A stretch of 64,000 nt of DNA from Takakia lepidozioides (Eukaryota; Plantae; Bryophyta): the NCBI GenBank assembly GCA_030704615.1, contig CM060731.1, positions 8,432,001 to 8,496,000 on the forward strand, read 5' to 3'. Numbering within the stretch: the stretch's first letter is position 1; each line of letters starts with the position of its first letter. This document shows positions 1 to 58,784 of the stretch, in pieces. Position numbers and translations under genes: made by a program. The notes below the pieces were generated by a model, which ran no database searches, was not told where the DNA came from, and saw only the letters and a list, made by a program, of their open reading frames with translations.

Positions 1-1212
1 CCAAACTTCGCTAGAACTTAGTGTTGTTAGTAGGGTACTAGTAAGCAAAAAAAAATGAAGAACCTAATATTATGGACAAGTATTTAAATGAAAGACTCGT
101 CATTGGAACCTGGACCTAGTATTAAGATGTAACATAGAAAGCAAACTGTAACATGCCTAAATGCATGTCAATCCAAAACAAAGAAAAAAACTAGCGCAAA
201 TGTGAAGGGAAAAGACATTTCAATAACCATAATGGTTATGGTTATGGCTATGGTTATGGTATGAATAGATTTGGAAAGAAAATGGCGTTATATAACGATT
301 TTTGGGAAGCGCCTGGATCTCATGGGAGAAAATGGATCTGAAGAAAACATGAGAGAGGATAAAAAGTCAAACCACCAAATAAAAACAATGAGAAATAAAA
401 ATTGCTTAAAATTTGAACAACGGAAAAGGACATGTGAAATTCCCTCTTAAACCAGGGGCAAAGATGAGAAGTATGAAAATCAAATGAAATGAAAGTTTGG
501 TGCAGAAAAGTCGTAGAGCTTAGAGGGAAAATGGAGGAAAACCTCATAGAAAAACTTGAGGACTGGCAAATTGAAAAATTGTATGTCAACAACGATTGAA
601 TAAGGCTCCTCCTAGTGGGAGACTTCAGTGGGAGAATTGGTTATGCGAAAAGCAAGTCCAATGTTTCAGAGAAGGACTGGAATTGGGCTATTTTCTTCCA
701 TTGTTAAAAACCTCTTTGACCGAATTTGAAGACTCCAGTGGTCGTGCCTACCCATTTTGTTCTTGTGATCTATATGTTATGTAGGCGAAACTCCCCCACA
801 GGGTCATCTTTGTTGACCAAGACGTACAGCAGGCCAGCATCCAGCAAACCAGAAACAAAGGACGAGAACGTCCACTAGACATTCGAGGTTTAATGCGACA
901 TAAGAAGATAACAAAAAGGATCCCCAAACGCAAACAAGAAGGGCCATATAGAGAAGAAAATTTTATTTCTTAAATCGAAGTACTGGAGTTGACCTCAACA
1001 ATATGTCCTTGGTCTGGAACTCGCTCGCACGACTCGTTTTCTGACTGATGATTAGCCTCCTCCAAATTAACGCGCGCCTTCACTGATTCGGCGGTAGTAA
1101 TTCTCTTAGTGCTATTCCTTGTCGTATTTTTTCGTGGAGGCATTGTCCACACAACATTGGTCACGTGGATCCATTGAGAAGGATCTGACGAGTTATACTC
1201 CCAAAGTTTTGA

Positions 1213-2200
1213 CCAACAGTCCCTGTACCTTTCCAAGTCTGTTGGGTTACCACCTTTTCTCGGTCTCCACCACTCCACCTTCAGCTTCTTAAAATTGGTG
1301 ATGACTCTGTTGTCTTCGAGACAAAAGACTACTCAAATATCTTGGATGCTTTTGTGGCTCGGCAACTCATGTCTAGTGCTTTTGTATTTTTCTCCACACA
1401 AGAATCATCGAGAAATCTTGTGTCATACATCCGGAATGGCCCTGGATCAAAATCGTTTATTATCCGACAGGGTTATTACATTCCTGGCGAGTTTGAATCA
1501 CCTTACAAGAGCTGCACGACTATATTCTCCCGGACGGTCCTTTGCCTCGACTACGTATTTCCGGCAACAGCTGAGGAGATGGTGAATCCGGACGACCACA
1601 TTCAAACTGTTTTGTTATCGCCGGACCCAATTAATCCCGTTATCCAAGGACCAGATGTAGACCCAACCTCGCAGGATATGGAGTGCAGAACTTACAATCA
1701 TGAGCTGAGGCCGGACACCTACGATTACCTGGTTTTTTTTTTTTTGCAGGGACGGGATGTCTTGTGTGAACATTTTCGGAGGACTGGCAATGACATATGT
1801 TCTTCTTGTAAGCGGATTCTGCATCTTGGAATTGTCTGTGTTTTCAGTTTTCCGGATTTAACTCTCGTATTATTGACGTTGTCGGAAAAGCGTGTTTAAC
1901 CTGTGTCTAATTGTTCCATTTTGTTAACCTCCATTGGGCAGTGGAGGTTCATGTTATTGGAGTTGTGGGTGTTTTGGGTGTTTGTTATTCTGCAGATTGG
2001 TGTATTTGGTAGTTGTCTCAAAAGAAAGCCTAACCCTTTCAATCTATCGATGGTAGGTGTTCGTCGGATTTTTTTTGATATCATTGTTTGGTTTCATTGC
2101 AAGAAAGAAATATTCGTGTGCTCGACATAAACTTTGTAACAAAAAAGAAATTTTGTAGAAGCAAGGTGGAGGCCTATTTCAGGACCCTCCAGATTGACAA
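1213..2200 (+). pseudogene. Degenerate beta-class amino-(N4C/N6A) DNA methyltransferase-like segment of a multi-exon gene
   Basis: ORF 1342..1899. Removing one T from the T13 run (1733-1745) gives YNHELRPDTYDYLVFFFCRDGMSCVNIFGGLAMTYVLL, whose spacing matches motif X-I (E/Q-K-P-x2-L-x3-L-I-x3-S-x2-G-D-x-V-L-D-P-F-x-G). A GTAAG donor follows (~1808), then RNIRVLDIN (motif II-like) in ORF 2088. No clear DPPY/SPPY seen. Confidence 0.5.
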
Positions 2201-2219
2201 TCAGACTATCGCAGGAGCC

Positions 2220-2362
2220 GGAGATGACGGAGACTCACTGCAGGATGACGAAGTAGACGAAAAAAATGATGACGAAGGACACGACAAGGATCAGGACGAG
2301 GAAATGGAGGAGAAACAAGAAGAGGATGACGAGGAGGAGAAAGACGAAGATGAGAACATGGA
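2220..2362 (+). other. D/E-rich acidic coding tract
   Basis: ORF 2088..2438: GDDGDSLQDDEVDEKNDDEGHDKDQDEEMEEKQEEDDEEEKDEDE. Confidence 0.7.
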
Positions 2363-3035
2363 AATCGTCAACGGAGTCCAGGGGCAGATCCGGCTAATGT
2401 TGGGAAGGAGAGGGCTAGGAAATTTCACGGTTGGATAATCTAGGTAGTACTCCAAATACCCAAGAACGCGTTGCGCCACAAGATGTACACAATCTGGACA
2501 GCTCTTCCTCCAGTTCCGATAACACCACGAATAAGAATCCGGCTTCTCCAGGGGGACAAGAAGTGACATCAAGGGAGTTAGTTGAAACCCTCGGTCAAGG
2601 GTTCACACCTGTGGAAGGTGACGAGCCATTGATTATGTCACTGGATCCCGTTAACAATCGTCGTGAGCTAGTATCCCAGAATGTCACCCAGAAAGTGGTT
2701 CTGGATATAGGTAACGAATGACAATTAGTGAATGTTTATTCGTACACACTTCTGAATACAATATGATAATATTGTAATTATATATACTTGTGATTGGAAT
2801 AATCCGAATGTTTTTTCCATATGACAATATTGTAATTATATATAATCCCAATGTTTTTCCCATATCCGTCTTTCTGGACTTCCGAATAAAACATATTTCC
2901 ACCCGGATACATATTTCCGTTCGTACACCTTTGTGGACAGCCACTAACCGATTTGGATAATTTTTCTTGTAGATCCAAGAATCCAATACGGAGGAAATGA
3001 CACACACAAGAAAATGATCAAAGGAGACTTAAACG

Positions 3036-3612
3036 GTGAAGAGACACGTGGATCTGACAGTGAGGGCCAGGTCACCTGAGCCGGTTCCGCAAGTAACCTT
3101 CACTGTCCAGTCGACGTTGCCATCAAGGGACGCAAGAATTGAGTCGAAGAATCCTCCTACTTGCGGGGAAGGAGAAGAGACAGAGCACCACAATCGTGTA
3201 ATCCAACAACAGATCCCGATTCGGGTAAAACATTGGCTTTTTTCTTATTACTCTTATTATTGGTCTTTCAGTCTAATTTTCGGTATTGCTCAATTCGGTA
3301 ATTTTGTCAGATCATTTTGGACCACCATAGTCGTCATCCGTGGGATTTTTCATTAATTTCATGTAGATTCGTGAGACGACGCTTGAGGAGATCAAACACA
3401 AGAGGACCGACTCTATCGAAATTGAGACGGTGAAGAGAAGAGTGGATCGAACAATTACTGTCGCTCTATCTGAGCCAGTCATACAAGTTACCTCCACTGG
3501 ACAGTCGAGGTTGCCATCTGCCTCCACAGAGAAGGACGATAACGTTGGACGTAGAGATGGGAAAGAGGAGGAGCAGCCTGCCCAGGGATCTCAACGGCCC
3601 ACTCCAAAAATG
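3036..3612 (+). repeat. Diverged tandemly duplicated exon pair
   Basis: KRHVDLTVRARSPEPVPQVTFTVQSTLPS (3036-) vs KRRVDRTITVALSEPVIQVTSTGQSRLPS (3430-). Each is followed by a GTAA donor and a T-rich intron-like stretch. Confidence 0.7.
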
Positions 3613-3707
3613 GTAATGATTTCAACTCCATTCTTCCGTTTGTCTACTTTGGGATTTTACTCAAATTGAAATTAATAATGAACTTTTCTGTTATTCCATA
3701 GGACAAC

Positions 3708-4512
3708 ATGCATTACCCTCCAGTCAACTATTTCCTTTCTGTCAATCCAAACGATCTGCATTCCCTTCCTTGGGGACCGAACGGATGCCGGCCAGGATAC
3801 TACGTCCTGGTTTTGGACATCGGTTACCTTTGTGAGGTTTTCCTAAAGGATGGAAAGAAAACACCTCCTGCCACCCAGCCTTGTATCTCCGCAGGGAAAT
3901 TCCAAGTTAGCTACGCGAAACAGTCTTGACGAATTCGTTAAGTGGGCCGTCAAAAAGTTTTCCGTTTGGCTTTGGAACACTGGACCTGAAATGAACGTCG
4001 AGACTATCGCCAAGGCCGTGTTCGGGAAGTATTTTTCCCAGGTCAGAACTTACAGCAGTGAGAATTCCGTCATGCATAGATCGACATTCAACGAAAAATG
4101 GCCCAAAGCTTCCAAAAATCCCATCTACTTTAAACGTCTTTACGACATTTTCGCTGAGGAAGACCCGATGGCTTACAAATCCAATACTCTCCTCATCGAC
4201 ACTGTAGACAATATGTACAAGTCCTATTTGAACCCGTTAGGACATACCATCTTCCTTCCAAAATATAAGGCGCGCGTGGACCCTGACAGGGATAAATTTC
4301 TACTGGAAGAGCTCAAGCCTCACCTTAACATGTTCCGGTTATCGGGGATGGATGTCATGCCGTTCAACGACCTACATTCTTTCGGCGTTTCGAAGGATTT
4401 ATTCGAGGACGACCCAACGGTCAAATTTCTTAGAGACTTTGATTATAGGTGGCAGAAGTTTCTTAGCAATCTCGAGTTGCGTGCCGCTGCATTGGGACAT
4501 AAAATATTTTAA
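3708..4512 (+). pseudogene. FCP1/NIF (HAD-like) phosphatase-like domain 1, frameshifted near 3916
   Basis: VLVLDIGYLC (motif I-like) in ORF 3708 joins LDEFVKWAVKKFSVWLWNT...FKRLYDIF...NTLLID...KSYLNP in ORF 3850. Confidence 0.7.
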
Positions 4513-4617
4513 CTGAGTTTGCTGAACCTCGGCTGTCCAGTGGACGTTCTTGTTCACTTTCCTGGTGTCAGTTTTTCCAATGCATTGTATTGTTCCCTTT
4601 TATCATCCTAAGTATGA

Positions 4618-5364
4618 ATGACTCTCTGGCAGATTGGAGCACCTGTTTCTCCTCCTGCGCAAGGGTTGCATTTGATTATTTTTGACTTGAATGGAGTCTT
4701 GTGCAAAATCTTGAAGCACCAGAAGAGCTACAATGTCCCCCGGTTTTTAGAATCGGACTACAAAATTCCAGCTCTTGTCGGATTCCGACTTGTCTTTAGA
4801 CGGGAGAAATATCGTGAAGTGTGGACAGAGTTGCACAAACACTACCGGTTAGGGATTTGGAGCTCTATGATGTACAAGAACTTGCAGCCCATCCTGGATT
4901 TTTTGCTTCGTGGTCTACCTCAACCGGCCTTCGTTATGTCTCAAGAGGATTGTATTTCATGCCCTACTTCGGTTCACCCTCAATTCAAATCAGGATTGGA
5001 CCCTCCTCATTTGTTTTTGAAGCCACTGGTCAAGGTCTGGCAGAGATTTGGTGGGCAATACACCAAGAGTAACACTCTGTTCATTGACAACACCGCCATG
5101 AAGTGTGTATTGAACCCGCCCGACTCATGTCTTGTTCTCAAACCGTTCCAGACCGTTGAGACTGATGGTTGCTATCTTCTCAAGGTTCTTCAGACCTATT
5201 TGCTTGGAATGAGGAAACATCCCACTGTTTCAAGCTATCTTAGGAAAAAAAGGATAGGGTTGAGTCTTTTTCCCATTGTTTCAAACGATCCCAAGTTTAG
5301 CCCATTCTGGGATCTTATTGAGGACAACGGTTTTAACAGTCTCAGATATGATGCTTCAAAATAA
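4618..5364 (+). CDS. FCP1/NIF (HAD-like) phosphatase-like domain 2 (probably an internal exon from 4632)
   Basis: LIIFDLNGVLC, LGIWSS, FLKPLVKVW, NTLFIDNTAMKCVLNP; acceptor tggcag| at 4631. Confidence 0.8.
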   Translation: MTLWQIGAPVSPPAQGLHLIIFDLNGVLCKILKHQKSYNVPRFLESDYKIPALVGFRLVFRREKYREVWTELHKHYRLGIWSSMMYKNLQPILDFLLRGLPQPAFVMSQEDCISCPTSVHPQFKSGLDPPHLFLKPLVKVWQRFGGQYTKSNTLFIDNTAMKCVLNPPDSCLVLKPFQTVETDGCYLLKVLQTYLLGMRKHPTVSSYLRKKRIGLSLFPIVSNDPKFSPFWDLIEDNGFNSLRYDASK

Positions 5365-6843
5365 ATTATTTTTTATCAATCCCATCTCACTCAAGCTATT
5401 GAATATCTTCATGGTTTCTCTTTTTCATTTCCTTGTAATCACACACTTGAAAGATATGGTACTCTCATTTTGACTCATTTTCAGTTGAATTCTTTACGCA
5501 CATTCCGGGCAATCCCAAGACTCTGATACAGGCCTTCATACGGGGACAAAACAGTGGAGGTTCGCATTCGTGCATTCCCGGATTTATGATTATGTCTCTT
5601 TGGCAGGTTCAAGGAGATGCTGAGAACGTCATCGGTTCCTCAAGTCCCCTAAAGGAACCCTCCGGATCAGCTGTGAGTCGGAGTATTGAAGGCTTTCCGA
5701 GGATTCACGATGGTGCTCAAATTGAGGATGGATTCTCTGTCAGACCCTTGTCCTCCCGGGAAGCAGGCGACACTCTTCTCCTCTCGGGGTCCTCCTGGGG
5801 GTAAAATCCAAGGTGCAGGTGAAGAACACAAATATCCTGGAGACTTTATCAACCTTTCCGAACATTCCTCACCCTCCCTGTTCAGTACGCAGGGTCTGGT
5901 CTATCCAACCGTCGGGGACTCGGCTACGGCTCCGCTGCACCTGCTTCCGTCTCTTCCTCGCATATCTCCCCAGCACGAGGGTTGGACAGCCCAAATCCGC
6001 AGGAGTCAGGTGACTTAAACTCATTTCTCGCTCCTTGCTCATTCTCATAGTTTCACTTAGTTTGGGGTCTGATATTCATCTGTCGCTCCAGGTAAGAAAA
6101 TCTGCAGATTATGACCTTCCTGTCAAACGACGTCTGCATTGGAATGCAGTTCCGAGATAAATTATTCCTTCGTTGCGTTTTCATTCCATCCAGGATGTCG
6201 AGTGCTCAAGGGGCAATTTTCTGTGCTTGCCTGTTGTTGCCCCTCCACTTCTCCCATCGTTCAATGGCAAAACATTTCCAACATCGATACAGCATGACCT
6301 TGAACTGCTCGCACAATGTTCTGCACCAAAGAGGCGAAAAACAGCCCCCGAGCCATTTCCTTCCTCTGTAGGGAATCATTACAAAGGACAAAAGGCTGAC
6401 AAGAAAAAAAGAGCGGACTCCAAAGACATGAGGACTCCCTCGGATGTTGTGGCGCCTCGTCAATCCAAGCTCGCGGGAATCCACTGTTCTTCTGCTAGAC
6501 ATTCCAATAAGGCTTCAATGGTACATTTCAAAACAATTTCTCCACTTTCGTTTGCAGTTTTATTTTCTGTCCCAAACTAACTCCGTAATTTCTATACAAG
6601 CGAGTATGGAGCTGCATAACTTCTTGAATGCGCCTCCCGACAAGGTGCGTCCACTAACCTCCACTTGACAGCCGACGTTCATCTTTTCGTGATCTCGAAC
6701 TCTTCGATATATGGTCTACTCTTGGTCATTTACAGTAGTCCATTGTCGGGACACTTATGTCTCCGAAAACGTAGAGGTCACTCTGAAAGTAAGAAACACT
6801 ACATTGTGTTGTTTCTGACGACGGGAACACTTAAATTGCGCAG

Positions 6844-7592
6844 GTTGGTATCGTCCATCAGCCTTCATTTGCAACATTGGGGAAGAGGAAACGGAGGCTA
6901 TTAATATTGAGTGTCAACGGTCTCCTTTGCTACCGGCCACCTCCAACCGGCGGTGAATTGCTTAAGGAGAGATTTCGTTTTAGGAAAGTTACAGTTTATG
7001 TTCCCGAAAGACCTTTTGTGGTTCCCCGGCCCGGAGTCTTGGAGTTTCTCAACCTTGCGTTCATGCATTTTCACGTGGCGATCTGGTCATGTGCTGAAAG
7101 ACATGTTCTTTGTAGGATGCTCGAGTGCTTAGTTCCTACGAAAATTGCGAAGAAGTTTTGCTTCATCTGGTCAGCTGAGGATTGCAAAGACACTACCGGT
7201 TATATCATGCCGGGGATGAAATATCTCGTTAAGGATATTCGCACTGTTCTTGCCAAGTACCCTGGTACACCCTTTGCAACGCAGGGACAAATACTCCTTG
7301 TTGATGATGAGCCATCAAAGGGCCTCCGAAACCCACCAAATACTGGATTCTTCCGTATTTCATACAAGCCATCACCAAAGGGATTGGTTGACCAGGATGA
7401 TATGACAAAAGCTGTGTGACCATATATATTGAAAATGGCTGCAGCTTCAACAGTCGTAGATTACATCAGCGAAAACCCTGCCAAGTGTTCTCGTAAGCCT
7501 ATTGGTCATGACCATGCCTATTGGGCTTGGTATGGAAGATATGTTGATCCTCGTGTTTGGATCCCACAACAAAAGGAACCTGATTACCTTGG
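6844..7592 (+). pseudogene. FCP1/NIF (HAD-like) phosphatase-like domain 3 with in-frame stop at 7417-7419
   Basis: LLILSVNGLLC, RPGVLEFL, VAIWSC, FIWSAEDC, ILLVDDEPSKGLRNP; ORFs 6877 and 7429 share one frame; acceptor at 6843, donor near 7592. Confidence 0.75.
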
Positions 7593-8579
7593 TATGTACT
7601 TATCCCACTGTTTGTTGTTTATGGAGAATTTGATCTTGAAAGTGTCTTCCACTTGCACTTTTACTTTATCATTTTTTCTGCAAATGTTCCACATTTCAGC
7701 TGACATTTGTCATATGAAAAAATTGTTTTGCCCAGTCACATTCAAGGAGCGAATTCGAAAAGAAGAAGAAGAGCTTCGTGATTGGCAAGAATGATGGGCT
7801 TCCCGGCAGGCTTCAAGGGCATCAAGAGATTCAACAAGTAGAGTTCCAAGTAACATTTCGGATGATAATGTTACTACTAGGTTCGAATTCTCCGAAAGTA
7901 TTTCCGTTTTCATCTGGTGCGGAGACCGTTGCAAGTGGTTGTGGTAACCGGAGGCGTCTTCGAACACATGCCTTGACTGCGAGCCGTTTGGGAGGAGGCT
8001 TTGTAATACTAATGGGTTAGTGTAAGCCGTTGTATGGCTTCGAGCCGCTGGATAACATTAAATCCAACGGATGTACAGTTGACGTTACATTAAGTTTGAC
8101 TGTAACACCAAAGTTGCAATCTCTAATAAAATATAAATGTTTATCATCAATGTATGCGGACACATTCTTTCATATCATCCTCTTCATCACATGCCATGAT
8201 TGTTCTATGTTTGGTTTTGTATGTCATCTGATATGACAACCATTTTCTGCAAAAAGTTTTACATATCTGACCTCACATCATGGTGTAATTTATTGCATCC
8301 TCCCATTTTTTTCGTGAACGTCAACTTGGCAGTGGATGTTCTTCTAAAACCACAATACATACTTATATTGTCTCCAAAAATGTTTGGAGGATTATATTGT
8401 GTATAAAATAAACAAAATAATCATATATATCGCTTTATTTCAATAATAAATTTTGATTATTCATATTTCTCATATTATTTCTGGACCAAACAAAAGTCCA
8501 GAATTAGTTAAAATAGTGTTATTAGGGATATCATGACTAGAAATCAGTTTGAGAGCATCACAAGATGCCTACATTTGGT

Positions 8580-9080
8580 GGACAATGACACTGGTTTCAT
8601 ACAAATCAGACCCGAGATTTGATAAGCTTGCTGAGGTGAGGTGGTTGTTGGAGGAATTTGTCCAACGATATGCAAGTCATTTCAATCCCCACCAGTTCTT
8701 GACAGTGGATGAGATGATGGTGCATTGGTCGGGCACGATATGCGGGTTCAAAATGTACATGCCAGATAAGCCAGTGAAGCATGGCATAAAAATATGGGTT
8801 GTTACATGTTCAGTTTCTAAGTATGTTCATAATTTTGAGGTATACTTGGGCAAAGATGATGCTATGGATTTGGGCCATGGTCAAGGGCATGCGGTGGTCA
8901 CGTCGATGTTAAAGGGCTTTGAAAACAATGGACATGTGGTGTGCCCATAATATTTTCACTTCTATTCGTTTGTTACATGATCTACTTGAAAATGGCATTA
9001 TGGCCTGTGGTACAACTCGCATTTGTCGCAAGGGCTTCCCTCCATCGGGCCAAAATGCATGATCGAGGCAAATGGATGTA
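8580..9080 (+). mobile_element. piggyBac-like transposase fragment (DDE_Tnp_1_7)
   Basis: FDKLAEVRWL, LTVDEMMV, KMYMPDKPVKHGIKIW, NFEVYLGK, GHVVC followed by a frameshift. Confidence 0.9.
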
Positions 9081-10728: not shown

Positions 10729-11720
10729 TGTCACGGACATAGCCCAGAGGAACTTACCAGGAGTAAATACCAAAAGTTATCAAGTTACCATGTTACCGAA
10801 AATAACCATGACTTAACGTGATTTACCATTATTTACCAAATTACTGGGAGTTTACCAAATTACCAAGAGTAACTTGGGAAACTACTCAGGAAGCTTCATT
10901 TTGAAGAAACTTCTCCATCAAGATACCTCCTTTGTTTAAGGAAGCTTCTCCATCAAGAAACCTTTGTTTAATCTTGGAAACTTCTCCAGCAAGAAATCTC
11001 CATAGGGGAAGCTTCTTGGGGAAGCTTCTTAGTAGCCAGTATATATAGGAGGCGAAACTGGACACTCTTCAGTCTCGCCAACACAAGTTCAAGCTACTCT
11101 TGTTCCAAGTGCAGTACTCCAGTCCAGTTTCCAGTATCTGGTATTCCAGTCCAGTTTCCAGCATTCCAGTATCCGAGTCGAGTTCCAGTATTTTGTACTC
11201 TTGTCTATTGTTATAAAGATCATCTTGATTCATGTTCACCTACCATGCATTCGGCCACGCCGACCTTGACTTCTTGTCTAGTCTTGTACTTCTAGTCTGA
11301 TCTCTTGTTTGTATTCTGTCATGTTCTCGTCCTTGACAGATGTAGTTTCCACCATTCCAGTATCCGAGTCGAGTTCCAGTATTTTGTACTCTTGTCCATT
11401 GTTATAAAGATCATCTTGATTCATGTTCACCTACCATGCATTCGGTCACGCCGACCTTGACTTCTTGTCTAGTCTTGTACCTCTAGTCTGATCTCTTGTT
11501 TGTATTCTGTCATGTTCTCGTCCTTGACAGATGTAGTTTCCACCATTCCAGTATCCGAGTCGAGTTCCAGTATTTTGTACTCTTGTCCATTGTTATAAAG
11601 ATCATCTTGATTCATGTTCACCTACCATGCATTCGGTCACGCCGACCTTGACTTCTTGTCTAGTCTTGTACCTCTAGTCTGATCTCTTGTTTGTGTTCTG
11701 TCATATTCTCGTCCTTGACA
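10729..11720 (+). repeat. 5' LTR (10729-11338) plus two extra ~191-bp U5-end copies (11339-11529, 11530-11720)
   Basis: ...CTCGTCCTTGACA occurs three times at 191-bp spacing; TATA (CAGTATATATAG) at ~11037-11048. Confidence 0.9.
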
Positions 11721-11722
11721 GT

Positions 11723-11733
11723 TTGGCGAGACT
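11723..11733 (+). promoter_or_regulatory. Self-priming primer-binding site
   Basis: TTGGCGAGACT is the exact reverse complement of AGTCTCGCCAA (11071-11081), ~30 nt downstream of the LTR TATA box. Confidence 0.8.
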
Positions 11734-11758: not shown

Positions 11759-13292
11759 ATGGAAGGCACATTTACGGAAATGGTCACCACATTGCAGAGT
11801 CTTAAGCTCCAGATGCAAGAACTTCGTACATCTACCGCCCAATTGCAAGCTGATCAGTCTCAAGATCTTGGCAACGCTCTCCACAATTTGCAACAACAAA
11901 TTTCAGAGTTAAGGGAGATTCAAGAAGCACTGAAGATCGACCATTTTGCTACGACACTACGAAGTCAACTAAATCAACCTCGAGACAACCTACATGTTAT
12001 AAACGACTTCGAATTCAAAGATGACTTACTTTACTTCAAGGGACTTCTCTATGTACCTCTAGGACCTACACGACTTCGAATTCTTCAAACATGTCATGAT
12101 CTTCTGGCTTCAACAAAACATTGGAGTTGATATCCAGGGACTATTGGTGGCCGCAGATGTGGAAACTCGTAAATGAATTTATAAAGTCTTGAAACACGTG
12201 TGCTAGAGCGAAGGGACCACGACATCGACCTTACGGCCTTCTTCAACCATTACCCATTCCCAAGGGTCCATGGTCGTCCGTGTCTATGGACTTTATTACG
12301 GACCTTCCAATTTTCAAGACCACCGATTCAATCCTTGTTATTGTAGATCGTTTTACGAAGATGACACATTTCATTCCATGTAATAAGACGGTTACCGGCG
12401 AGGAAACTGCAAGACTCTTCCTCAATAATATCTACCGTATTCATGGACTCCCGAAAGACAATGTATCTGATCGATGACCACAGTTCATATCAAATTTCTG
12501 GAGGGGATTATTTCACATATTGAATACTAAGATCAACCTCTCTACAGCTAATCATCCACAGACTGATGGTCAAACCGAACGTGTAAACCAGATTTTGGAG
12601 CAGTATCTTCGCTGTACGATAAATTATCACCAAGATAATTGGACGGACCTTCTGTCATTGGCTGAGTTTGCCTACAACAACACTATACATTCTTCGACCA
12701 AGCAAACTTCATTTTTCTCCAATTATGGTTATCATCCTCGAGCAAACCCTTTCCACATGAAAACTGTTGGAAGCCTTGCTGCAGAAAACTTTGCTATTCA
12801 TCTTGCTACGATTCACAATGAGCTTACATCCCACCTCGCAGAAACTCAAAACAATACAAGGACTATGTAGATCAACGTCGTCAACTCCAATCCCAGCGAC
12901 CATCAAAGAAGTTGGATTATCAACGCCTGGGACTATTCAAAATTATTTGACAAATATATCTGGTCAGTTTTCGGCTTGAACTCCCACGAAGTATGCGCAT
13001 CCATCCAGTCTTTCATGTTTCACTATTGGAGTTGTATCATCCATCGAATATTCCAAGGAGAATTTCCGTACCACCTCCACCAATCGAAGTCAATCATGAA
13101 ATTGAGTATGAAGTCGACGAAGTCCTAGACTCTCGCATCAAGTATAAACGTCTTGAGTATTTCGTACATTGGAAAGGCTACGACATCAGCGAACGAATGT
13201 GGGAACCTTCATCCAACCTCGTCAATGCCTCTGACAAAGTCCAAGAGTTTCATCAACGATATCCAGCTAAGCCCCAAGCTACACGTCAATGA
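11759..13292 (+). pseudogene. Deleted gag-pol: gag N-terminus fused to integrase (HHCC, rve) and chromodomain
   Basis: LYVP...ILQTCHD; SMDFITDLP...VDRFTKM; [20 protein letters not shown]; IHPVFHVSLL; EYEVDEVLDSR...YFVHWKGY. No PR/RT/RH; several stops and frameshifts. Confidence 0.92.
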
Positions 13293-18564: not shown

Positions 18565-20250
18565 TCAGAAGCACATAGGGCACCTGATCAAGCCATTTTC
18601 ATTGCAATCAGAGCAGCGTGAAACCTCATTGGTCTCAGTGATGACCTTGCAGCTCCCGCTGCACTCTGGACAGGGCATAAACCGGACTCCCCCACAACCA
18701 TTACATGGTTCTCGGGATAACTGGATAGGCAGACCTTTCACCAATTCAGCCAGCTTTCCGTCCTCATGCAACTGGAAAACCTCCTCTGCTCCTCCAATGT
18801 ATCGCCCTTTGATGAAAACCCTGGGGACAGGCACTGGTTTTCCCGTAAGGATCTTCAACTCCTGTCGGAACTCAGCATGCATGGATACGTCCCTTTCGTC
18901 GACATACACGTTGAATCCATGGAAAGTCATTCTCAAAAGTTGGCAATCCTCATATGTTTTCCTGATTCCACGCAGGCTAGTCAAATAGAGCACAACTCTT
19001 TCCTCCCCGCCTGGAGGGCATCTTCGCTCATATCTTTCCAATGGCTCCGAAACTATTGGCTTCATCTCCTCAGAATCTACAGGAGCAACCTTACAAAAAG
19101 AGATCTTTCTCGAGCCCCCATCTCGCAATGACTCCTGAAGCCCAGTGCTTTCCACTCCACTTGATAACGTTGTCAATTTCCCACTTGCATCATCACGTCC
19201 ATCAAAATAGTCCCTGTCTGATAGATGCCCGAATGAACCCCCGGGACATTGAATCGAACTATCGGTGTCTGCTATGCTTGCAGAAGTAGAAGTCGTCTCC
19301 TCATCACTGCACCTAGCATTGCACCAGTCATCGGAGGAGGAGGTATGTTCATCATTTGAGTCAGCAAAAAAGGACAGGAAGGCTGGATCAAAGAGATCAG
19401 CGTTCCTATCAGTGTTGTCTTGAAGATCGGAAACTGATGACATAGGATTCGTGCTCCCTAACATGACATGCCCAGTTGATTCCACCGCAGCATCATGGCT
19501 GGCGACAACTGCATCAGCAGGTTCGCAAACACTCTCAGAAATAGAGGCATCCACAGCGTGCACACCTTTGCCATTGTTTGAGGGGAATGGCGTTGCCATT
19601 TCTTTGGGACGACGTACTATGCCACTATCGAACCCCCGCATGGCATCAATAGCTGAAAGAGAGCGAGACCTTTCCAGAGTTCTCTGCCTGCCTGATGGAA
19701 CACTAATCTTCTCAACATTTTGTACTTCATTGTCCTTACTGGATGTAAGCGCATGCAGAACTACGGGAGCCGCACGAGGGGTCAAATCATCAAGTCCCTC
19801 CATAAGCTCCCATGTATTGATGGTTTCTGGTTCTTCCCCCTCATCGTCGACACTAGTCTCCTGCAATGGTCTCTTGACCGCTTCGGATTCTTTGCTAACC
19901 ACACCAAGGTTCAGTTTAGGAAGACCCAAGCCCATCTCAGTCCAAGTTCTGGAAACCGACTTATCCCGAACAGGCGGCATGGAATCGAACTTCCTCAATT
20001 TCTTGTAGGTAGGCCCATCGCTCCGGCCACCACCGATAATAGAAATAAGTGCTTCATCGACATTCCCTGTCTCCACGAGTCTCATGATGCCATACGTGCT
20101 GGATGTGAGCGCCACCACATGGTAGTTGTAATAGTCATGCCTATCTTTCTTCTTTTGAGCGTGGAGTGGAGCCATGGAAGAGCTTCTGGAAAAAAGTTTG
20201 CCTCTCCCCTCTCCCTGCATTGTTAAACTTCTAGATGCTGTGCACCCCAT
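18565..20250 (-). CDS. Glutaredoxin-like (GRX-like + C-terminal CxxC zinc-ribbon) plant protein
   Basis: MGC start, HVVALTSSTYG, PETINTWELMEGL, CPPGGEERVVLYLTSLRGIRKTYEDC, ERDVSMH, VPRVFIKGRYIGG, four CxxC pairs ending CNENGLIRCPMC; intact 561 aa. Confidence 0.95.
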   Translation of the reverse strand: MGCTASRSLTMQGEGRGKLFSRSSSMAPLHAQKKKDRHDYYNYHVVALTSSTYGIMRLVETGNVDEALISIIGGGRSDGPTYKKLRKFDSMPPVRDKSVSRTWTEMGLGLPKLNLGVVSKESEAVKRPLQETSVDDEGEEPETINTWELMEGLDDLTPRAAPVVLHALTSSKDNEVQNVEKISVPSGRQRTLERSRSLSAIDAMRGFDSGIVRRPKEMATPFPSNNGKGVHAVDASISESVCEPADAVVASHDAAVESTGHVMLGSTNPMSSVSDLQDNTDRNADLFDPAFLSFFADSNDEHTSSSDDWCNARCSDEETTSTSASIADTDSSIQCPGGSFGHLSDRDYFDGRDDASGKLTTLSSGVESTGLQESLRDGGSRKISFCKVAPVDSEEMKPIVSEPLERYERRCPPGGEERVVLYLTSLRGIRKTYEDCQLLRMTFHGFNVYVDERDVSMHAEFRQELKILTGKPVPVPRVFIKGRYIGGAEEVFQLHEDGKLAELVKGLPIQLSREPCNGCGGVRFMPCPECSGSCKVITETNEVSRCSDCNENGLIRCPMCF

Positions 20251-24607: not shown

Positions 24608-26943
24608 ATATATGCCTTTAATTGGAACACACATAAGAGTAGGCACTTATGCCATCCCATAAAAGTAAAGATGGACACTTTGCCGAACCAAGCGTCAATT
24701 ATGGTGTCGCTTGACCCCACAGGGCAACAAAACTCTCAAAGGGTCCAAAACATTTGCAAAAGATAGCACTCTACATATATATATATAACACAACTGGTGA
24801 CAGAGGCCCTAGAAGCTTTGGAATTAGAACCGAACACTATAAGGAACAAGCACACTGCCCAGCAAAGCCCAAGAACCGAGGGTGAGAAGGCAGAGACCGA
24901 AACAAACAACACAGGAACAGCCATGGACAAAACGGAGGAGTGAGCCCACAAGGGCGGCCAACTGCCAAAAGAAACACAGCCTCCACTTCAAAAAGTGACC
25001 AATTTTCCATCACTTTCCATCATTTGTCATTGACCATTTTCATCAATATGATGAACACAGTCAAAGAAATGGATGAAATAATCCTGTAGCGAAGTTTAGA
25101 GATGGAAAGAATTCAGTGCAACGTGGACAATGTCATCTAATGTCATCCAGTGGAAGGGGACCTATAGGCGCTTAATGTTAAACTTGCAAGCAGATCCAAG
25201 GTGGATCTTCCAAGCGCGAGGTAACTTATTTTATGTTTGCCAGGAGTGTCACGAGGGTAAAGTAAACTATTGATTTTGGAAATTTGGAGGGGTCCCCTAT
25301 CAGTGTCATGGTCAGTGACATGTCCACTGAAGTCCAGTGAATTGAACCTGTCCTGTCCCTTGTCACTTAGAGGGGACCCACCTATAATAGTGAAGGACAG
25401 GTTCAATTCACTGACTGGGAAAAGGGGATTTATTTTTGAGGGGTTGCTCTCGCCCACAGTGCCAGTACTATAGCATAGTATTTGAAGAATACAGAGAGCA
25501 CCTCTCTCCAGTGTTGTCTTTGTCAAATAAAGTAAAACTAGGGTAGCCTGTGCCGCTGGCCAAAGTGTCCAGTGTCATCTAAGTAGATTAAAGCACATTA
25601 TTATTGCAAGGCTACTTTTAAGATCTGATAGACATTGTTTTGAACTTCCCTTCTTTTGACATGTCATTTACTATGAATCAATCATTATGATTGGACCGCT
25701 ATTTTTCTTAAAGACAGTTTGATAAACATTTTGCCCTCATTTTGAAAGGCAAAATGGCTCGTGGAGACATCAAGGGCGTCAAATTAAAGTGTGGGAAGGG
25801 CTATAGTTGGGATTGCCCTTCAGACAGTGTCGGTTTCATTAGATGAGTGAATAGTGTTTGCATCTCTTATTTCTCTTCTTTTTGTAAATCAATTATTAGT
25901 CGAACTAGAGTACAAGTGTTGTTTTATTATATGTTGGCAAAGAATATGATTGGCACTTTGTTAGGCACTCTTATTTATGCAAGGCTATTTTTTGCATGTC
26001 CTTTAGTGTAAAAGGTGACCCAATAATGTGATTCTTCTTTTTGAATGGCTCTTTTTGGTCCCTATCAAACTAGATCAACCCCACTACCAATCAAAAGAAA
26101 GGGCTATGACATAGTCTCATAAATTGTTAGAGCAGCGTCACATACATGTGTGGAGCCAATACCCAAGATCATGATTCTTAGCTTATGATGGGAGCTATTC
26201 TTACGCTTCCCCTCCAATTTGAGTAGTTATGGACATGATAACACATTATTTCACCGGCAGAGTGTGTGCCCAAACTTCGGTTGGTAACCTCCTTTAAAAT
26301 GGGCATGACGAGCATATTTTGTTGAAAATTGAAATCAGCTACCCACATAATGATCACGGCTTGATGTAGTACTCTCCACAAAAGGTAGCGCCTCAAAAGG
26401 CTACTGCTTTCCAGTAGAAAGGTGAACACCTTTGTGACACCAATCCGTCGATTGAACCCACCACTTCCGAGGAGGTATGTGCCAATTACCACAAGGTTAG
26501 AATTTGATTGACAAATCAATTAACCCCTAAAGGACGAGAGGTGCTTCTGGGTTTTTGGACAATTCCGGGAATTTCCCAAAAATACCCTAAATTGCATTTG
26601 GGATGTGGGATTTTGTGAAATTTCCGGCCTCCTCCAGGTCAGGCAATCGGTGGCCGGAATTTCGCCTGAATCTAGCGACGTTTTCCGGGCCACGTCAAGG
26701 TTTCCCATTATTTGCCAGGGCCAGCTCATTCGAGCCGTCCCGATGTTCCTCGGCGTTTAGGGGAGGGCCTCACAAGCACCCGACTCTAACTGTCGGGGTT
26801 CCTTCTTTGTGAACTTGTCAACTACCACCAGACATGGGACAAGCCCGACAAGCAAGTTTACACACTGAACTGAGGGGGAGTCGAACCCCCTGATCTACCC
26901 TCATATGTAGAGAGTCCCCCCCCCCACACACACACCCACATGT

Positions 26944-28940
26944 TCATCGACCCCGGAGTTGATGTGCATCACGCAAACAATTGCCAAGACACATGAATGC
27001 ATCCTCGCATTGGGGACAGAAGTAGTGGGTACGCAGCCTGCGGCGGATGCACACACGACGAAGCAGGCTGTGCAAAGAGGAATGCCAGCGGGCAGGCTCT
27101 GTCGCCAACACGGATGCACGAACCGGACGCACATGCAGCCTGCCAGGAGCTGTAAGGGCGTGTGCCAAGGCCAACGAGAACTCCAGATGGGTCAGGGGAC
27201 GCAACCCCCTCGCTCTCATGTGATAGACATGCAAGATGTAAGAATTCACAATCGTGGTGTCCACAAGGAAAAAAAACATCTATGCCACCATTTATGAGTC
27301 TTCAGCTGCATGCTATATGCAGCTCGCATCTGGTCTTGTACATCTACACCACGCATGTAAGTTTGGTATTGAACATGCATTGGAACAGAAGGCACCTGTA
27401 CCCTAGCATTCCCCACAAACCTTCGCACCATCACAGGTGAATTCGGACCAGATGTTGGCCGAGATGCGGATGACACCATGAACACGCCTTTCTTATCCCA
27501 CCACAAACAAGCAACATCTTGTCGGCTGCGGTGCATACGCCACCATGTGTCCCCTTGCTTGGCAGTCTTGGACTTGGACAAGCGCGTCGAGGAAGGAGGC
27601 AATCCCTTTCTATTGACCCTGACAGTGCCAGTGGCCCATGTCCCAAGCAAAGCCATGTCATACAGCAACCTAGGTGATGTGAAGTAATTGTCAGTCACCA
27701 CCACATGGCCAAGTCCATGCAATGGAGACACTAAACTCCAAACCACATCATATCCTTCACCTTTGCTAGACTTCTTCCTGATGCCCTCGGGGCCCCCATT
27801 CTTGCCACAATAGACATCAAAATCATACACATAGCTACTGACTGCGTCTGCAAGGGCCTACACTTTGATGCCCCACTTGCATGGCTTTTTAGGCATATAC
27901 TGCCGTATAGCACAATACTTACCCTTGTACCTTATCATAATCTCGTCAACTGTCAACAATTTGTGCAAGTTCCAATGCCATTTGCAGGCACTGGCAATGT
28001 CTTCACATGCCCATCTCACTTTCCCAATTTTGTCAAACGCAGGACTGCTACGATCAGACACCAACGTCAGGTTATCCACCAAATGCAAGCAACGTAAGAT
28101 TGCTTCATAACGCTCTCTTGTCATGACCTTCCTGATGATAGGGCATGCAAAGAATACCTCACTCTGCTGCCAGTAGCAGCGGCTGTTTGGCAGCCTCTTT
28201 ATCCACATAAACAAACACAAACCAAGTCAGGCGAGTAGCTCTGGCACAACCAATGGCCTCCAAGAAGCACCACCTCGAGTTTCATACGTCATCCTCTCCG
28301 CCGCGTAACGATTGGTCTCTCGACAAATTCGCAGCAGGGTTGCTTGGGTCCAGAACAACTTGAAAAACAATTCCACAAGGGAACAATTCCCAAAAATCCG
28401 CTGCAACATGGGCTCACGTGGGGGACTAGAGAATTTTTCTTTATCACTGCAGAAGGTAGTTTCTCTGCACTCCCAACTTGCAGGAGCGAACAAAACTGCA
28501 AAAGCCTCTTCACTCACCTCGTCAACCTCCTCGGCAGGCCCATCACTCTCCCAGTCCTTTTCCTCACACGAATTGCCCTCATATCCCTCCATAAGCCCCA
28601 TCTCCACATCCCCATTTCCACGATCCAACAAGTCTAAACCACTAGCATCCAAATTGGGCCCCGCATGGGAAGAGCCCTGCAAATTGAAAGACAACACATG
28701 CAGAGGAGACCTGTAGGGGTTAGCGGGAGGCGCACAGTCACTCGCAGTGAATTGCATTTGTGCGCTACCGCCCACTGTGCACCCCGCATCACTCCTTCTT
28801 TTCACAGTTCTTCTCCTCACAGGTGGTCGATGAGGAGGCGAATTCTCCTTGCCTGCAGGCCTTTCCCGCTTCTGGCGCGCTACATCCCTCATTTGTTTGA
28901 CTGTCCTCATCTGGCCAGACATCCTCTCTAAGCACAACAT
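26944..28940 (-). pseudogene. piggyBac transposase
   Basis: ETNRYA, LTVDEIMI, YMPKKPCKWGIKV, VVTDNYFTS, YMRGVDVQDQ, KWWHR, C-terminal Cys-rich domain. Two in-frame stops at likely Trp codons (28227, 27858) and one frameshift in the A-run near 27270. Confidence 0.93.
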
Positions 28941-29255
28941 TCATAGCCTCACTAAAGCCCCTTTTGTCACCTTCCTCCCTTCTCTCTTTCCACCCCAAAA
29001 TCAAATTAACATGCCTTCTAAATGCAAAGTGAAAATTCACAGGACGAGGGTGCTTCGGCCACGCTGCGCGCACGGAGGCAGAGGCAAAGAAAGCAAGTAC
29101 TCCTCACATAGCAAACCCAAAATCTCCCTCAATTGCCCCTCCGTACAGTGCTGCTCAATCAACGCCCACTGAGTGACCACCTCAATAGCCCTCTTATACT
29201 GCAGCGGAGGTGTTGGTGGCTCCAAGGCATCACACACCTTGCGCTTGTGACCCAT
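28900..29255 (-). pseudogene. Conserved ~120-aa accessory/N-terminal domain of the piggyBac family
   Basis: MGHKRKVCDALEPP...EYLLSLPLPP / WPKHPRPVNFHFAFRRHVNLILGWK...RGFSEAMNVVLREDVWPD; homologous peptide at 56412-56765. Confidence 0.75.
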
Positions 29256-29364
29256 AGCATCCTGCGCCCAGACCCTATAAACCCACCTAAGTACGAGCAA
29301 TGCAAATGAGGAGACACAGAATGCAGAAATGACACCAACGGCCGCCAAGGCATAGCGCTGCAAC

Positions 29365-29662
29365 ACCCTAAACGAATGCACTAAAGCTCATTCAACAGAG
29401 GCGACAGTAATATCCCAAGACACAAAGAAGCAACAAGCTAAGGGCACTTAGCATAAATGAGAGAGCCATGTGCACTGCCTCCCCCCAGCCTACGAATTCA
29501 TGAATGCGCATCAGCGCCCTAAACGAACGCACTGAAGGACATTCAACAGAGGCGGCAAAGCATATCAGAGAACACAGACAAGCAACAAGCTAAGGGGACT
29601 TAGCTTCAATGACAGAGCCTGTAGAATGCCTCTCCCCAGCCTGCGAATTCATGAATGCGCAG
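29365..29662. repeat. Two ~150-bp tandem repeats in the piggyBac 5' region
   Basis: CCCTAAACGAA...CATTCAACAGAGGCG...AGCAACAAGCTAAGGG...GAATTCATGAATGCGCA occurs twice. Confidence 0.8.
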
Positions 29663-31632
29663 ACGCGCCACCCGCCTCTAACCCTCAGCAATTGTGGGTT
29701 GGATACCCAGGCAACCAGAAATCAACAAGGCCTTGTGCCAACGCAAAATGCTGTCGAACACAAACACAAGCCACAAAATGCATGCGGGATGGAGTTGGCG
29801 GGGAGCTGTGAAGAAGAAGGTCGAGCTGCCAAAATGCGCGCAAAAGACGGGCCGGGCGGGGGGTGCACAAAGGGCCGGGCGGTGCCATCATGGCGGGTGC
29901 CCATGCACCCCATGCCTCATCACCCCTGCTTGCCCCCCGCCACAAAATCCCACCTGCGTGGCCGCTGCCACCTGCCATGTCGACGGTCAACTGCCGTGGC
30001 CCCCCCCCACCCAAAATCCTGCAATTTCCAAACTTCAAAAAATTCCTGACGACAGAGTTTTTCTCTGTTGGGGGCGCCATAAAGACTTGCATGTGCACCT
30101 CGTTCCGCGCTACATTTTTTGTTCAAGCCGCTTGTTCATCGGACTTCATCTGTGCATGCTACGGATGGATGAAAAATTGGGCCAACCCAATTCGGGTCGG
30201 CTCGTCGTTTAGGGGTTAATACAATCAATGCAACTAAAGCCACTATGGACATGGTGGAATCCATTCTACAAGCAACAACCATCTCAAAACAATATAGAAT
30301 GGTAGCCAACGATTCAAGAGTTCCAAAATACTAATTTGTTCATCCATGACTTGTTAAGATGAGACTACATGGAAACATGTCTACTTATTGGATTGCAAAC
30401 TACAATGTGGAAAAACAAGTGGTTGTAGTTACAAATCAGAGGCTTGCAACCAATAAATAGAGAGATTGAACAATATAAGCAAATATGCGTTGGCGACGTG
30501 ACCTACTTCCTACTAGTACCCCTTTGTTTCGTGATACGTGAAGGGGAATAATAATGGGAGGCACTTACTACTGCATATTCATCAAAAGGTATGTTGTTTG
30601 ATGTTGTTGTATCCTAAATGTTTATATAATTAATGTTAATGTTAATGTTTTGTAGGCTAAAGTGGCCCTTTACAACAAGGGTTCCACAGCTATTTTGCAG
30701 TGTATAATTGTTTTTCCAAACTATCTACCTTACATTGTACAAAGGAACGATCTTGGACATCTTGTCATGTAAATCCTTGCTTATTATGAAGGGTTAATTG
30801 ATTTTTCCTGGCTTAATTGTTATCATTAATGTTGTGTGGATATTCGTGACTTACACGTGTTGATGTAGTGGAGCATCTTGTAGTGGATGTTGGAGAAAGA
30901 ATTACTGAACCAAACCCGCCCAGCTTATTACGGAGAGTCATGTTATCCTCTAGGCATGTGCAACACCAAAAATATTGGTTTGTCAATATTGATGTGTAAA
31001 TGTCTTGGTAGGCGGAAAAGCAATGATGGCCAACCAGCAACGTCAAAGTCAAGGTGAAAGTGTTTGATGTAGGTATCTTGAAAAATATGCAAGATGGAAA
31101 TTACTAGATGACTATTACCCATCTGAAGATTTGGACCATGTATAACAAGAATCCTTTAAAGAAACTTATAGTTGTGTTATTACATTTTAAATACAAGTGC
31201 ACTTGTTTCAATGCCATTTGCATAGAAAAGAGACCGTCAAAATCTAGCTGTATGGCTTGAACATTCTTATAAATAACATGTTGGCCATGTACTACGTCGT
31301 GTAGGCTATCTTGAGGTTTATTTAATTTGAGGAGTAAAATCAGATTATGTCGTGACATTCGTGCCTTAGCTGAGCACATCATCTAAAATACTTTGATCTA
31401 TAATAACAACAACAAATGTAAATTACATTGGGATAGTCAAACAAGAATAATATGTAACTAAATAACTAGGTTTCAAAAACAACAAAACCCAAGTTGGGAG
31501 ATCTTCTTTCTATGCAGGAAAAATAAAAATAAAAAATCTTATTGATGTAGTATCTTTTTGGGTTACTTTTTGAGAATTAATTAGATTTATCATACAGCTT
31601 TGTCATCAACGATGTTGAAAGTATGACATATA

Positions 31633-44491: not shown

Positions 44492-44796
44492 TTCTGAAAC
44501 AGTCTTCACTTTTCTTCCTTGCAGGCTGAAGCTAGGTTTCTACTCAAACAGGAACAAGCTGTTCATCATGCGAATATCAACAAAACTTACTCAGATCTGC
44601 GCAGCAAGCTTAAACCCATCTTTCTCAGCTTGTCTAGAACTGCTAAATTTCTTGTGTATGTCTAAAACACAGCACCGTCCGTCGTCTGACTCATTGCCAC
44701 CCTCTTCAAAATGTATTGGGTGAGTCAAACCCACCACCAACGCGCTCCGGATCAGCTGTATAAATCGATCCTACCCATATCTTTACCTCCTGCTTA

Positions 44797-56960: not shown

Positions 56961-57338
56961 TGTGCGATGTAAGATTGTTCACCATTTTGCTGAGGTTTGG
57001 AAAATTCAATGCCTCAAGAGGGAAACACTGCCAGCATGGGTGTGTAGGGTAAATACATAGATGGGTGGACAAAAAACTGCGTAACACGTAGTTTCTGCAG
57101 TGATCTCCGTCCATGGTTTTATGGTTTAAACTATTAGATTGCAAAAACAATCATGTACCGGAGAGCTATGGACTTTTAAAGTTGATTATTATGGACTGCA
57201 GATGTTACAAGACTAAAAAAACATCATCTACACTCATATAATGGCACAAAGAAAAACATATTAGGGGTGTCATTTCTAAAACCAACCCAAATCCACTTTT
57301 ATATGGAGTTGTTACCTGAGAGCTATGGACTATTTTAC

Positions 57339-58784
57339 ACTGCTAGAGCTTACAACGAAAATTTGCCAGTCATCTGCCTTGTAGGGGGCCCAAATTCGAA
57401 TGATTTTGGCACAAACCGTATTTTGCACCACACCATTGGTATCGCTGACTTTAGCCAGAAGTTTCGATGCTTCCAGCAAGTAACATGTTTTCAGGCGGTG
57501 ATTATGTGCTTGGATGATGCACACGAGCTAATTGACCGTGCCATCTCCACAGCCCTCAGAGAGAGCAAACCTGTGTATATCAGCGTGAGCTGCAACCTTG
57601 CTGGCATCCCACATCCTTCCTTCACCCGTGACCCTGTCCCTTATGCTCTGACTAAAAGGGTAAGCAACCAACTCAGCTTGGAAGCAGCAATTGAAGCAAC
57701 AGTCAAGTTTCTAGATAATGCAGTGAAGCCAGTTTTGATTGGAGGACCCAAATTACGGGTAGCGAAAGCTGGGAAGGCATTTGTAGAGTTGGCCGAGGCA
57801 TCTGGGTATGCAGTGGCCACCATGCCATCAGCCAAGGGGCAAGTCCCAGAGACACTTCCCTATTTTATAGGCACCTATTGGGGCGCCGTAAGCTCCCCTT
57901 TTTTCCTCGAGATAGTAGAGTCAGACGATGCATACATTTTTGCGGGGCCTATTTTCAATTACTATAGCTCAGTGGGGTACTCACTACTGCTCAAGAAGGG
58001 AAATATAATTCTGTTACAGCCTGATCGGGTCATCGTTTCGGGCGCTTCCGAATTTGGGTGTATTCTTATGAAAGACTTCATGGAAGCACTGGCCAAAAGA
58101 GTGAAGAAGAATACAAGCGCTTATGACAACTATAAGCGCATTTTTATTCCCAGTGGCGAGGTCCCCAAATCTGAAACAGGAGAAGCATTGCGTGTCAATA
58201 TCCTTTTCAAGCACATCCAGGACTTGCTTTCCCATGACACGGCAGTGCTAGCAGAGACCGGAGACTCGTGGTTCAACTGTCAAAAGTTGAAACTCCCTGA
58301 GGGTTGTGGGTATGAGTTTCAGATGCAATATGGCTTGATTGGATGGTTTGTGGGGGCATTGTTGGGCTACGCACAAGCAGCCACAGACAAACGCGTAATT
58401 GCTTGCATTGGTGATGGCAGTTTTCAAGTGACGACACAAGATGTTTCCACCATGATCCGGTACGGCCAGAAGAGCATCATTTTCCTCATCAACAATGGGG
58501 GGTACACAATTGAGGTCGAGATTCACGACGGGCCCTACAATGTCATCAAGAATTGGAGCTATACAAGAGTTGTAGAAGCTTACCACAATGGTGAGGGAGC
58601 CCTATGGACCACCAAGGTCAACAATGAGACTGAACTAGTGGCTGCCATCAAAACTGCACAAGACAAGAAGGATTGTTTGTGTTTCATAGAAGTGATATGC
58701 CACAAGGATGATACTAGCAGGGAGTTGTTGGAATGGGGGTCTCGTGTGTCAGCTGCAAACGGCAGGGGTCCCAGCCTTGGGTAG
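57339..58784 (+). pseudogene. PDC: Pyruvate decarboxylase, remaining C-terminal ~480 aa (intronless, open frame)
   Basis: [19 protein letters not shown]...[29 protein letters not shown]...[33 protein letters not shown]; the first ~24 aa of ORF 57267 are non-PDC. Confidence 0.95.

Follow-up and report, generated by a model that had tools for sequence, protein, structure and literature searches.

The 64-kb window analyzed here is the whole stretch of DNA under study, positions 8,432,001 to 8,496,000 of contig CM060731.1 in the Takakia lepidozioides assembly GCA_030704615.1, and its coordinates are counted from its first nucleotide. At 867-8340 it holds a unit that we read, with a probability of about 0.68, as what is left of a large DNA transposon, now dead and lacking a transposase; its interior would consist, on the + strand, of a single long multi-exon helper gene or of two packed closely together. 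The gene ends in three anciently duplicated NIF/FCP1-type HAD domains, in which the catalytic motif is degenerate and motifs II and IV are kept. The unit as a whole is a decayed multi-exon gene, present as a dead copy. An origin from a transposon is made plausible by a palindrome private to 867-8340, by the decay of the copy, and by a truncated piggyBac fragment that abuts the unit at about 8518.

Three NIF/FCP1-type domains in a decayed gene

The three NIF domains, which had been proposed in a first-pass annotation of this DNA, all score above the curated cut-off of the Pfam NIF family (PF03031, 21.8 bits). The open frame at 3850-4512 (NIF1) reached 23.7 bits (E 4e-5), the one at 4618-5364 (NIF2) 38.0 bits (E 1.7e-9) and the one at 6877-7419 (NIF3) 37.7 bits (E 2.2e-9), all on the + strand, and an unfiltered search of the six frames of the window with a joint profile of the three domains found no fourth copy. 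This joint profile matches the solved NIF phosphatase UBLCP1 (PDB 3shq) at E 2e-5. Among the PDB sequences, NIF2 alone also matches UBLCP1 (3shq, E 0.0012), and NIF1 and NIF3, each searched alone, gave no NIF match. Language-model features of NIF2 (ESM Atlas) fall among NIF clusters (0.95), and its AlphaFold2 model, made from a 3-sequence alignment, was too poor for a fold search (predicted local distance difference test, pLDDT, of 44). Since the pairwise identity among the three domains is only 22-27%, their triplication is old.

3702-4509, + strand: NIF-like domain 1, split over two frames, of which one has motif I as VLVLDIGY (3810-3827) and the other the remainder; stop at 4510.
4618-5364, + strand: NIF-like domain 2, a 248-aa open reading frame (ORF) and the best preserved of the three; motif I FDLNGV; acceptor CAG/ATT at 4632/4633.
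6844-7591, + strand: exon of NIF-like domain 3; motif I LSVNGL; in-frame TGA at 7417-7419.

In regard to the catalytic residues, the canonical motif I, DxDx(T/V), is replaced by DIGY in NIF1 (3816-3827), DLNG-V in NIF2 and SVNG-L in NIF3, as read from translations of the decayed copy. The nucleophile Asp is gone in one domain, and the acid/base Asp is gone in all three. HAD motif II, a Ser/Thr after a hydrophobic strand, is kept as WSS, WSC and WNT in NIF1, NIF2 and NIF3, respectively, and the acidic motif IV (hhhD[D/N]) is kept as LFIDN, LLVDD and LLIDT, its Asp forming an invariant column in the three-way alignment. To regard the domains as pseudo-phosphatases, as was suggested earlier, is a fair reading of the departures from DxDx(T/V), although it is drawn from motif I of a dead copy only.

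Around these domains, splice candidates were checked by a script and the exons were searched one by one, which gave the following pieces.

1808-1995, + strand: putative 188-nt GT-AG intron (GTAAGC ... CTGCAG), with good sites and uncertain flanking exons; palindrome copy 2 (1926-1949) inside.
2079-2435, + strand: open frame with an acidic tract; the reading frame shifts at about 2420-2436 into the next piece.
2419-2718, + strand: open frame rich in Ser that follows the acidic tract and runs up to a donor-like GGTAAC.
2973-3366, + strand: decayed first copy of a 394-nt exon and intron unit, with in-frame stops at 3015 and 3030; palindrome copy 3 (3095-3118) inside.
3367-3612, + strand: the duplicated exon, second copy, with an open frame of 82 codons that includes palindrome copy 4 (3489-3512).
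3613-3701, + strand: 89-nt frame-keeping GT-AG intron (GTAATG ... CCATAG) from the duplicated exon to NIF1.
5485-5672, + strand: putative linker exon, acceptor TTTTCAG and donor GTGAGT, with the half-site CAGTGGAGGTT at 5552-5562.
5673-6605, + strand: low-complexity Ser/Pro/Lys-rich linker region, with open frames in all three frames and no family match.
6645-6843, + strand: 199-nt frame-keeping GT-AG intron (AAG/GTGCGT ... GCGCAG/G) from a short exon to NIF3; palindrome copy 6 (6656-6679) inside.
7592-7699, + strand: 108-nt frame-keeping GT-AG intron (GTATGT ... TTTCAG) from NIF3 to the last exon.
7700-7794, + strand: Lys/Glu-rich last exon, with the stop TGA at 7792-7794 and AATAAA at 8126.

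Two further features named in the first pass, the acidic tract and the duplicated exon, were recovered as well. The former is an Asp/Glu-rich tract at about 2220-2370 on the + strand, while the latter corresponds to a 394-nt segment repeated in tandem, at 2973-3366 and 3367-3760, whose two copies are 53% identical across 51 aa (E 3.5e-8). Likewise, every piece lies on the + strand, and the consensus GT-AG introns at 3613-3701, 6645-6843 and 7592-7699 keep the frame; the GT-AG-like boundaries claimed for the whole do not extend cleanly to the junction between NIF1 and NIF2. Frame-keeping donors at this junction are poor. The only good donor there (AG/GTGGCA, 4449) misses the frame of the acceptor at 4632 by one base, and an intron at 4450-4632 was therefore rejected. 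Downstream of NIF2, a candidate intron at 5330-5484 is frame-keeping, with a weaker donor. A score based on codon usage failed to tell coding frames from frames that are only open.

At least four disabling lesions are present in this copy: an in-frame TGA (7417-7419) within NIF3, a frame break in NIF1 between 3837 and 3894 (alternatively a 58-nt mini-intron), a change of reading frame at about 2420-2436, after the acidic tract, and two in-frame stops in the first exon duplicate. A further frame change may lie at a run of 13 T residues at 1733-1745. With its reading frame interrupted at several points, this copy can no longer function in any part. The co-oriented pieces, the frame-keeping introns, the last exon with its AATAAA and the lesions fit the earlier description of one giant decayed gene.

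The candidate exon starts at 1996, 2193 and 4633 share a common acceptor context, CAG/ATTG(G/A), which may be a trace of module duplication.

The front region and the methyltransferase claim

The first-pass annotation also placed a methyltransferase (MTase) segment with X-I-II-like motifs at the front of the gene. The pieces of this region are as follows.

1213-1896, + strand: 228-codon open frame, the region described as MTase-like; no family assigned.
1733-1745, + strand: T13 run followed by GCAG, either a polypyrimidine tract with its acceptor or a frameshift site.

Pfam at E<=10 assigned no family to the front ORF or to the other open segments of 1-2718 on either strand. The front ORF found no match among PDB sequences, no relatives in a word-index protein search and no signal in the ESM Atlas, and an exhaustive HMMER comparison with 1.84 billion representative proteins returned only two repeat-protein artefacts. 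Its single-sequence AlphaFold2 model, with a pLDDT of 31, was too poor for a fold search. Because the speed filters of HMMER can hide weak matches, we built our own unfiltered profile, a hidden Markov model (HMM) of beta-class N6/N4 MTases with 9 members (E. coli YhdJ and 8 phage genes, of which 5 were verified as PF01555 and the rest taken by annotation). Run with the filters off against 2,703 six-frame segments of the window, it ranked nothing from 784-2200 within E 100, and that region was outscored by random segments from other parts of the window. Motif IV, (D/N/S)PP(Y/F/W/H), is absent from the + strand of 1-3000, as searched by a regular expression over the six-frame segments. Two look-alikes of motif I, FFFAGTG (the product of the T13 run) and VNIFGGLAMT, occur in two different frames around T13, without support from a profile, and two motif I candidates in two frames are what chance resemblance would give.

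As far as can be judged from the sequence, the METHYLTRANSFERASE claim for the front region fails in this copy, as neither profile nor sequence comparison gave an MTase signal within 784-2200. The first-pass annotation had itself named beforehand an outcome that would refute it, namely that profile searches give no MTase hit, and this is what was found for the copy at hand. A weaker form of the claim would be that the front frame (1213-1896 together with 1750-1807) is the remnant of a dead beta-class N6/N4 DNA-methyltransferase-like domain that now lies beyond profile detection. We regard this as doubtful, but it has several points in its favor: the motif-level look-alikes RPDTYDYLVFFF and then VNIFGGLAMT stand upstream of the acidic tract, an open frame of 228 codons is unlikely by chance, and helper genes of the ParB-MTase type are known in algal Sola1 elements (PMC12477816). 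Set against these are the lack of an MTase match in Pfam (E<=10), the PDB, the 1.84 billion representatives and the Atlas, and the result of the PF01555-type HMM, in which the region stayed outside E 100 and below random segments. Moreover, a DPPY-type motif is lacking, and the second "motif I" (FFFAGTG) belongs to another frame.

On the - strand, a frame of 120 codons (973-1332) overlaps sequence that precedes the front ORF; no family matches it, and it may be an open antisense frame.

A 24-nt palindrome confined to the unit

A 24-nt imperfect palindrome, AACCTCCACTGGACAGTCGAGGTT, recurs along the unit with sites starting at 867, 1926, 3095, 3489, 4525 and 6656 and a degenerate one at 8317. 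An eighth palindrome is decayed and retains the intact right half-site CAGTGGAGGTT at 5552-5562. The copies that lie outside the introns and exons listed above are as follows.

867-890, no strand: palindrome copy 1, with 3 mismatches to AACCTCCACTGGACAGTCGAGGTT.
4525-4548, no strand: palindrome copy 5, within the 120 nt that separate NIF1 from NIF2.
8317-8340, no strand: palindrome copy 7, degenerate with 6 mismatches; it lies past the poly(A) signal, outside the gene.

At up to 3 mismatches, 5 matches were found against 0.00 expected. When up to 6 mismatches were allowed, the full sites numbered 7, all within 867-8340 and none in the other 56 kb of the window. Half-sites follow the same pattern, with 12 inside 880-8340 against 4 in the other 56 kb, where 1.6 per 64 kb would be expected. 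Apart from the 394-nt tandem duplication, the flanks of the sites are unconserved, so the 24-mer itself is the part that is kept. Predicted introns hold three of the palindromes; of the others, one falls between the NIF1 and NIF2 domains, one within an open exon and one downstream of the poly(A) signal. From this placement, mostly in introns and spacers and even past the end of the gene, the sites would belong to the element and not to the gene.

With the 394-nt duplication collapsed, successive palindromes are separated by 1059, 1169, 1036, 1014, 1117 and 1661 nt. The coefficient of variation of this spacing is 0.19 against a random median of 0.78 (P ~6e-4, calculated post hoc).

Concerning the role of the palindrome, the arms are paired in 79% of cells, compared with 82% in shuffles, and no compensatory changes were seen. 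As AACCTC and AACGTC, two variants of the half-site, are combined freely, positions 4/21 and 7/18 do not pair in most cases. Such independent variation of the arms, slender evidence from only 7 sites of one dead copy, speaks against a hairpin of RNA or DNA and in favor of half-sites bound in pairs by a dimeric DNA-binding protein. Alternatively, the palindromes could fold into hairpins in intronic RNA, with a role in splicing or in small RNAs, for instance; in favor of this, at least three of them lie inside predicted introns, on the transcribed strand. We consider it very unlikely, given the variation of the arms without compensation, the unpaired positions 4/21 and 7/18, and the two sites that lie past the poly(A) signal and within an open exon.

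Nature of the unit, related systems and surroundings

If the unit is a transposon remnant, its parts could have worked together in the following way. The palindromes would be pairs of half-sites bound by a dimeric DNA-binding protein of the element, which, by analogy with algal transposons, could have been a ParB-type domain that is missing here, and the sites would thereby label the DNA of the element. The NIF-like modules, for their part, would not act as phosphatases but would bind, without catalysis, partners that are phospho-Ser/Pro-rich, for example the C-terminal domain (CTD) of RNA polymerase II (Pol II). A more far-reaching version, highly speculative at present, is that the even 1.0-1.2-kb spacing of the palindromes was selected. 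The sites would then serve to load a ParB-type clamp, encoded by the element, that spreads until the entire transposon is coated, and the catalytically dead triple NIF would hold the phosphorylated Pol II CTD or a CTD-like partner on this coat of DNA and protein, the whole forming a land-plant device for self-recognition and for transcription or anti-silencing.

The closest parallels come from algae. In the Ectocarpus transposable element survey of 2025, the 21.5-kb element Sola1-1_Ec32 carries an accessory gene for a 1104-aa protein with ParB-like and N4/N6-MTase parts (PMC12477816). The same survey proposes that ParB-MTase proteins bind and modify their own transposon, and cites similar ones in green and red algae (PMC12477816). 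The Takakia unit would share with Sola1-1_Ec32 a large helper gene within a giant cut-and-paste transposon, proposed to bind and mark the element's own DNA. It differs in that no ParB or MTase is detectable in the copy, in that it carries three NIF/FCP1-like domains and an acidic tract, on neither of which PMC12477816 reports, in that its host is a land plant, and in that the copy is dead. Sola1 elements end in terminal inverted repeats and are flanked by a 4-bp AWWT target duplication (PMC3845634). In the red alga Bostrychia, the Plavaka accessory gene PAG3 combines a ParB-like domain with a 2-oxoglutarate (2OG) oxygenase and lies adjacent to tandem inverted-repeat arrays (10.1101/2025.02.11.637652). 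Common to both, as we infer, would be a DNA-binding cargo encoded by the element and paired with the element's own inverted-repeat sites. However, in Plavaka the tandem arrays stand beside the gene, whereas here single 24-nt palindromes occur about every 1.1 kb through introns and spacers, and both the superfamily and the effector domain differ. NIF/FCP1 domains are mentioned neither in PMC12477816 nor in 10.1101/2025.02.11.637652, and a literature search found no transposon with them.

By the profile match of all three domains and by motifs II and IV, the modules resemble the NIF/FCP1-homology HAD phosphatases (PF03031: SCP1, FCP1, UBLCP1, Dullard, TIM50), the nearest solved member being UBLCP1 (3shq). 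Unlike these, they occur as three domains in one gene, with DIGY, DLNG and SVNG in place of DxDx(T/V). TIM50 is a non-catalytic member of the NIF family and provides a precedent for a binding role. Plant DNA transposons are also known to capture host domains, such as the ULP1-protease domains found in Mutator-like elements (MULEs). The Takakia unit would be comparable to ULP1-bearing MULEs in that a DNA transposon would carry an enzyme fold of host type as a conserved accessory, although both the fold and the type of transposon differ. To our knowledge, no function in escape from silencing is known either for ULP1-bearing MULEs or for the NIF unit.

Should the reading hold at the level of a family, a land-plant transposon helper gene would join recognition of self DNA, through a private palindrome, to three disabled modules of the CTD-phosphatase type. 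The ParB-MTase accessory genes of giant algal transposons would thereby be extended to a NIF-bearing kind in land plants, offering a testable route by which a transposon could mark its own copies and touch the transcription machinery. The value of the present copy, dead and incomplete as it is, lies in the negative MTase result, the lesion map at the level of exons, the even spacing of the palindromes and the absence of hairpin covariation.

The limits of the unit are set in different ways on its two sides. On the right, the limit falls between 8340 and 8518, where similarity to piggyBac starts. On the left, positions 1-866 contain no palindrome, ORF, family match or terminal repeat, and the element is either 5'-truncated near 800 or runs off the window.

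8518-9047, + strand: piggyBac transposase fragment, the right-hand neighbor and not part of the NIF unit; coding similarity truncated on both sides.

An insertion of the unit into piggyBac was considered and is not supported, as the piggyBac fragment does not resume on the left of the unit.

The proposal that the gene travelled as cargo of a mobile element is thus plausible in view of the private palindrome, the decay and the abutting piggyBac, but neither a transposase of its own nor element ends accompany it in the window. Several observations weigh against the transposon reading. The word transposon rests on indirect signs, because the window lacks a transposase, terminal inverted repeats, a target-site duplication and a ParB-like domain. 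The only transposase in the window is that of piggyBac, and the element's own would be absent from this copy or off the window; when the sequence was screened for terminal inverted repeats, for direct repeats in the flanks and for CACTA ends, a single marginal AT-rich match was all that emerged, and no target-site duplication was found in the window. The open segments of 1-1900 gave no Pfam match to a ParB/Srx-type domain on either strand, and the 5' part may be off the window or deleted. No splice between NIF1 and NIF2 preserves the frame cleanly, so that a single transcript is only putative. The degeneracy of motif I, read from a dead copy, could reflect decay and not design, and the even spacing, noticed post hoc, could stem from the old duplication of a module made of a site and a NIF exon. 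Finally, word-index protein searches with NIF2 and with the alignment of the three NIF domains found no relatives.

Another reading would be that the unit is a decayed host gene, or a cluster of host genes, of NIF-family proteins, with the palindromes as an unrelated small repeat. The window without transposase or termini, the ordinary host-like genes elsewhere in it, the normal plant-like introns and the poly(A) signal are all consistent with this scenario. It is nevertheless improbable in our judgment, since the palindrome is confined to the unit, evenly spaced and extends beyond the 3' end of the gene, the copy bears multiple disabling lesions and is nested among transposable element fragments, and the word search found no similar annotated protein. 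Scarcely probable is a CACTA/EnSpm element with the NIF domain in a TnpA-like accessory gene, for which TAGTG at 8514-8518, near the right limit, could be cited, as no segment matches a TnpA-like or transposase family and no matching CACTA end or terminal repeat is found on the left.

Returning to the surroundings of the putative transposon remnant, the 64-kb window is eukaryotic DNA with much transposon debris, comprising piggyBac transposase fragments, a gypsy-type integrase ORF and tandem repeats, among which ordinary-looking genes occur as well (a GRXCR-type glutaredoxin, a TPX2-domain ORF and a TPP-enzyme ORF). Rfam gave no match over the window. A second, longer piggyBac transposase remnant lies at 26400-30400 on the - strand; it shares 42-64% protein identity with the fragment at 8518-9047, and the two have no similarity at the DNA level. 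At 11153-11725 there are 3 tandem repeats of 191 nt, 95-98% identical, each with a 50-aa ORF on the - strand, and they are followed by the gypsy-type integrase-like ORF at 11759-12130 (+). Two ORFs, at 37811-38944 (+, 377 aa) and 39771-40598 (+, 275 aa), have no Pfam family at E<=0.001. The single-exon ORF of 561 aa at 18565-20250 (-), with a glutaredoxin domain and a GRXCR1/2 C-terminal domain, is probably a host gene. The long ORF at 42608-44509 (-), with a TPX2 domain (E 4e-20), and the one at 57267-58784 (+), with the central and C-terminal domains of TPP enzymes (E 1e-17), probably represent host genes or fragments of such genes.

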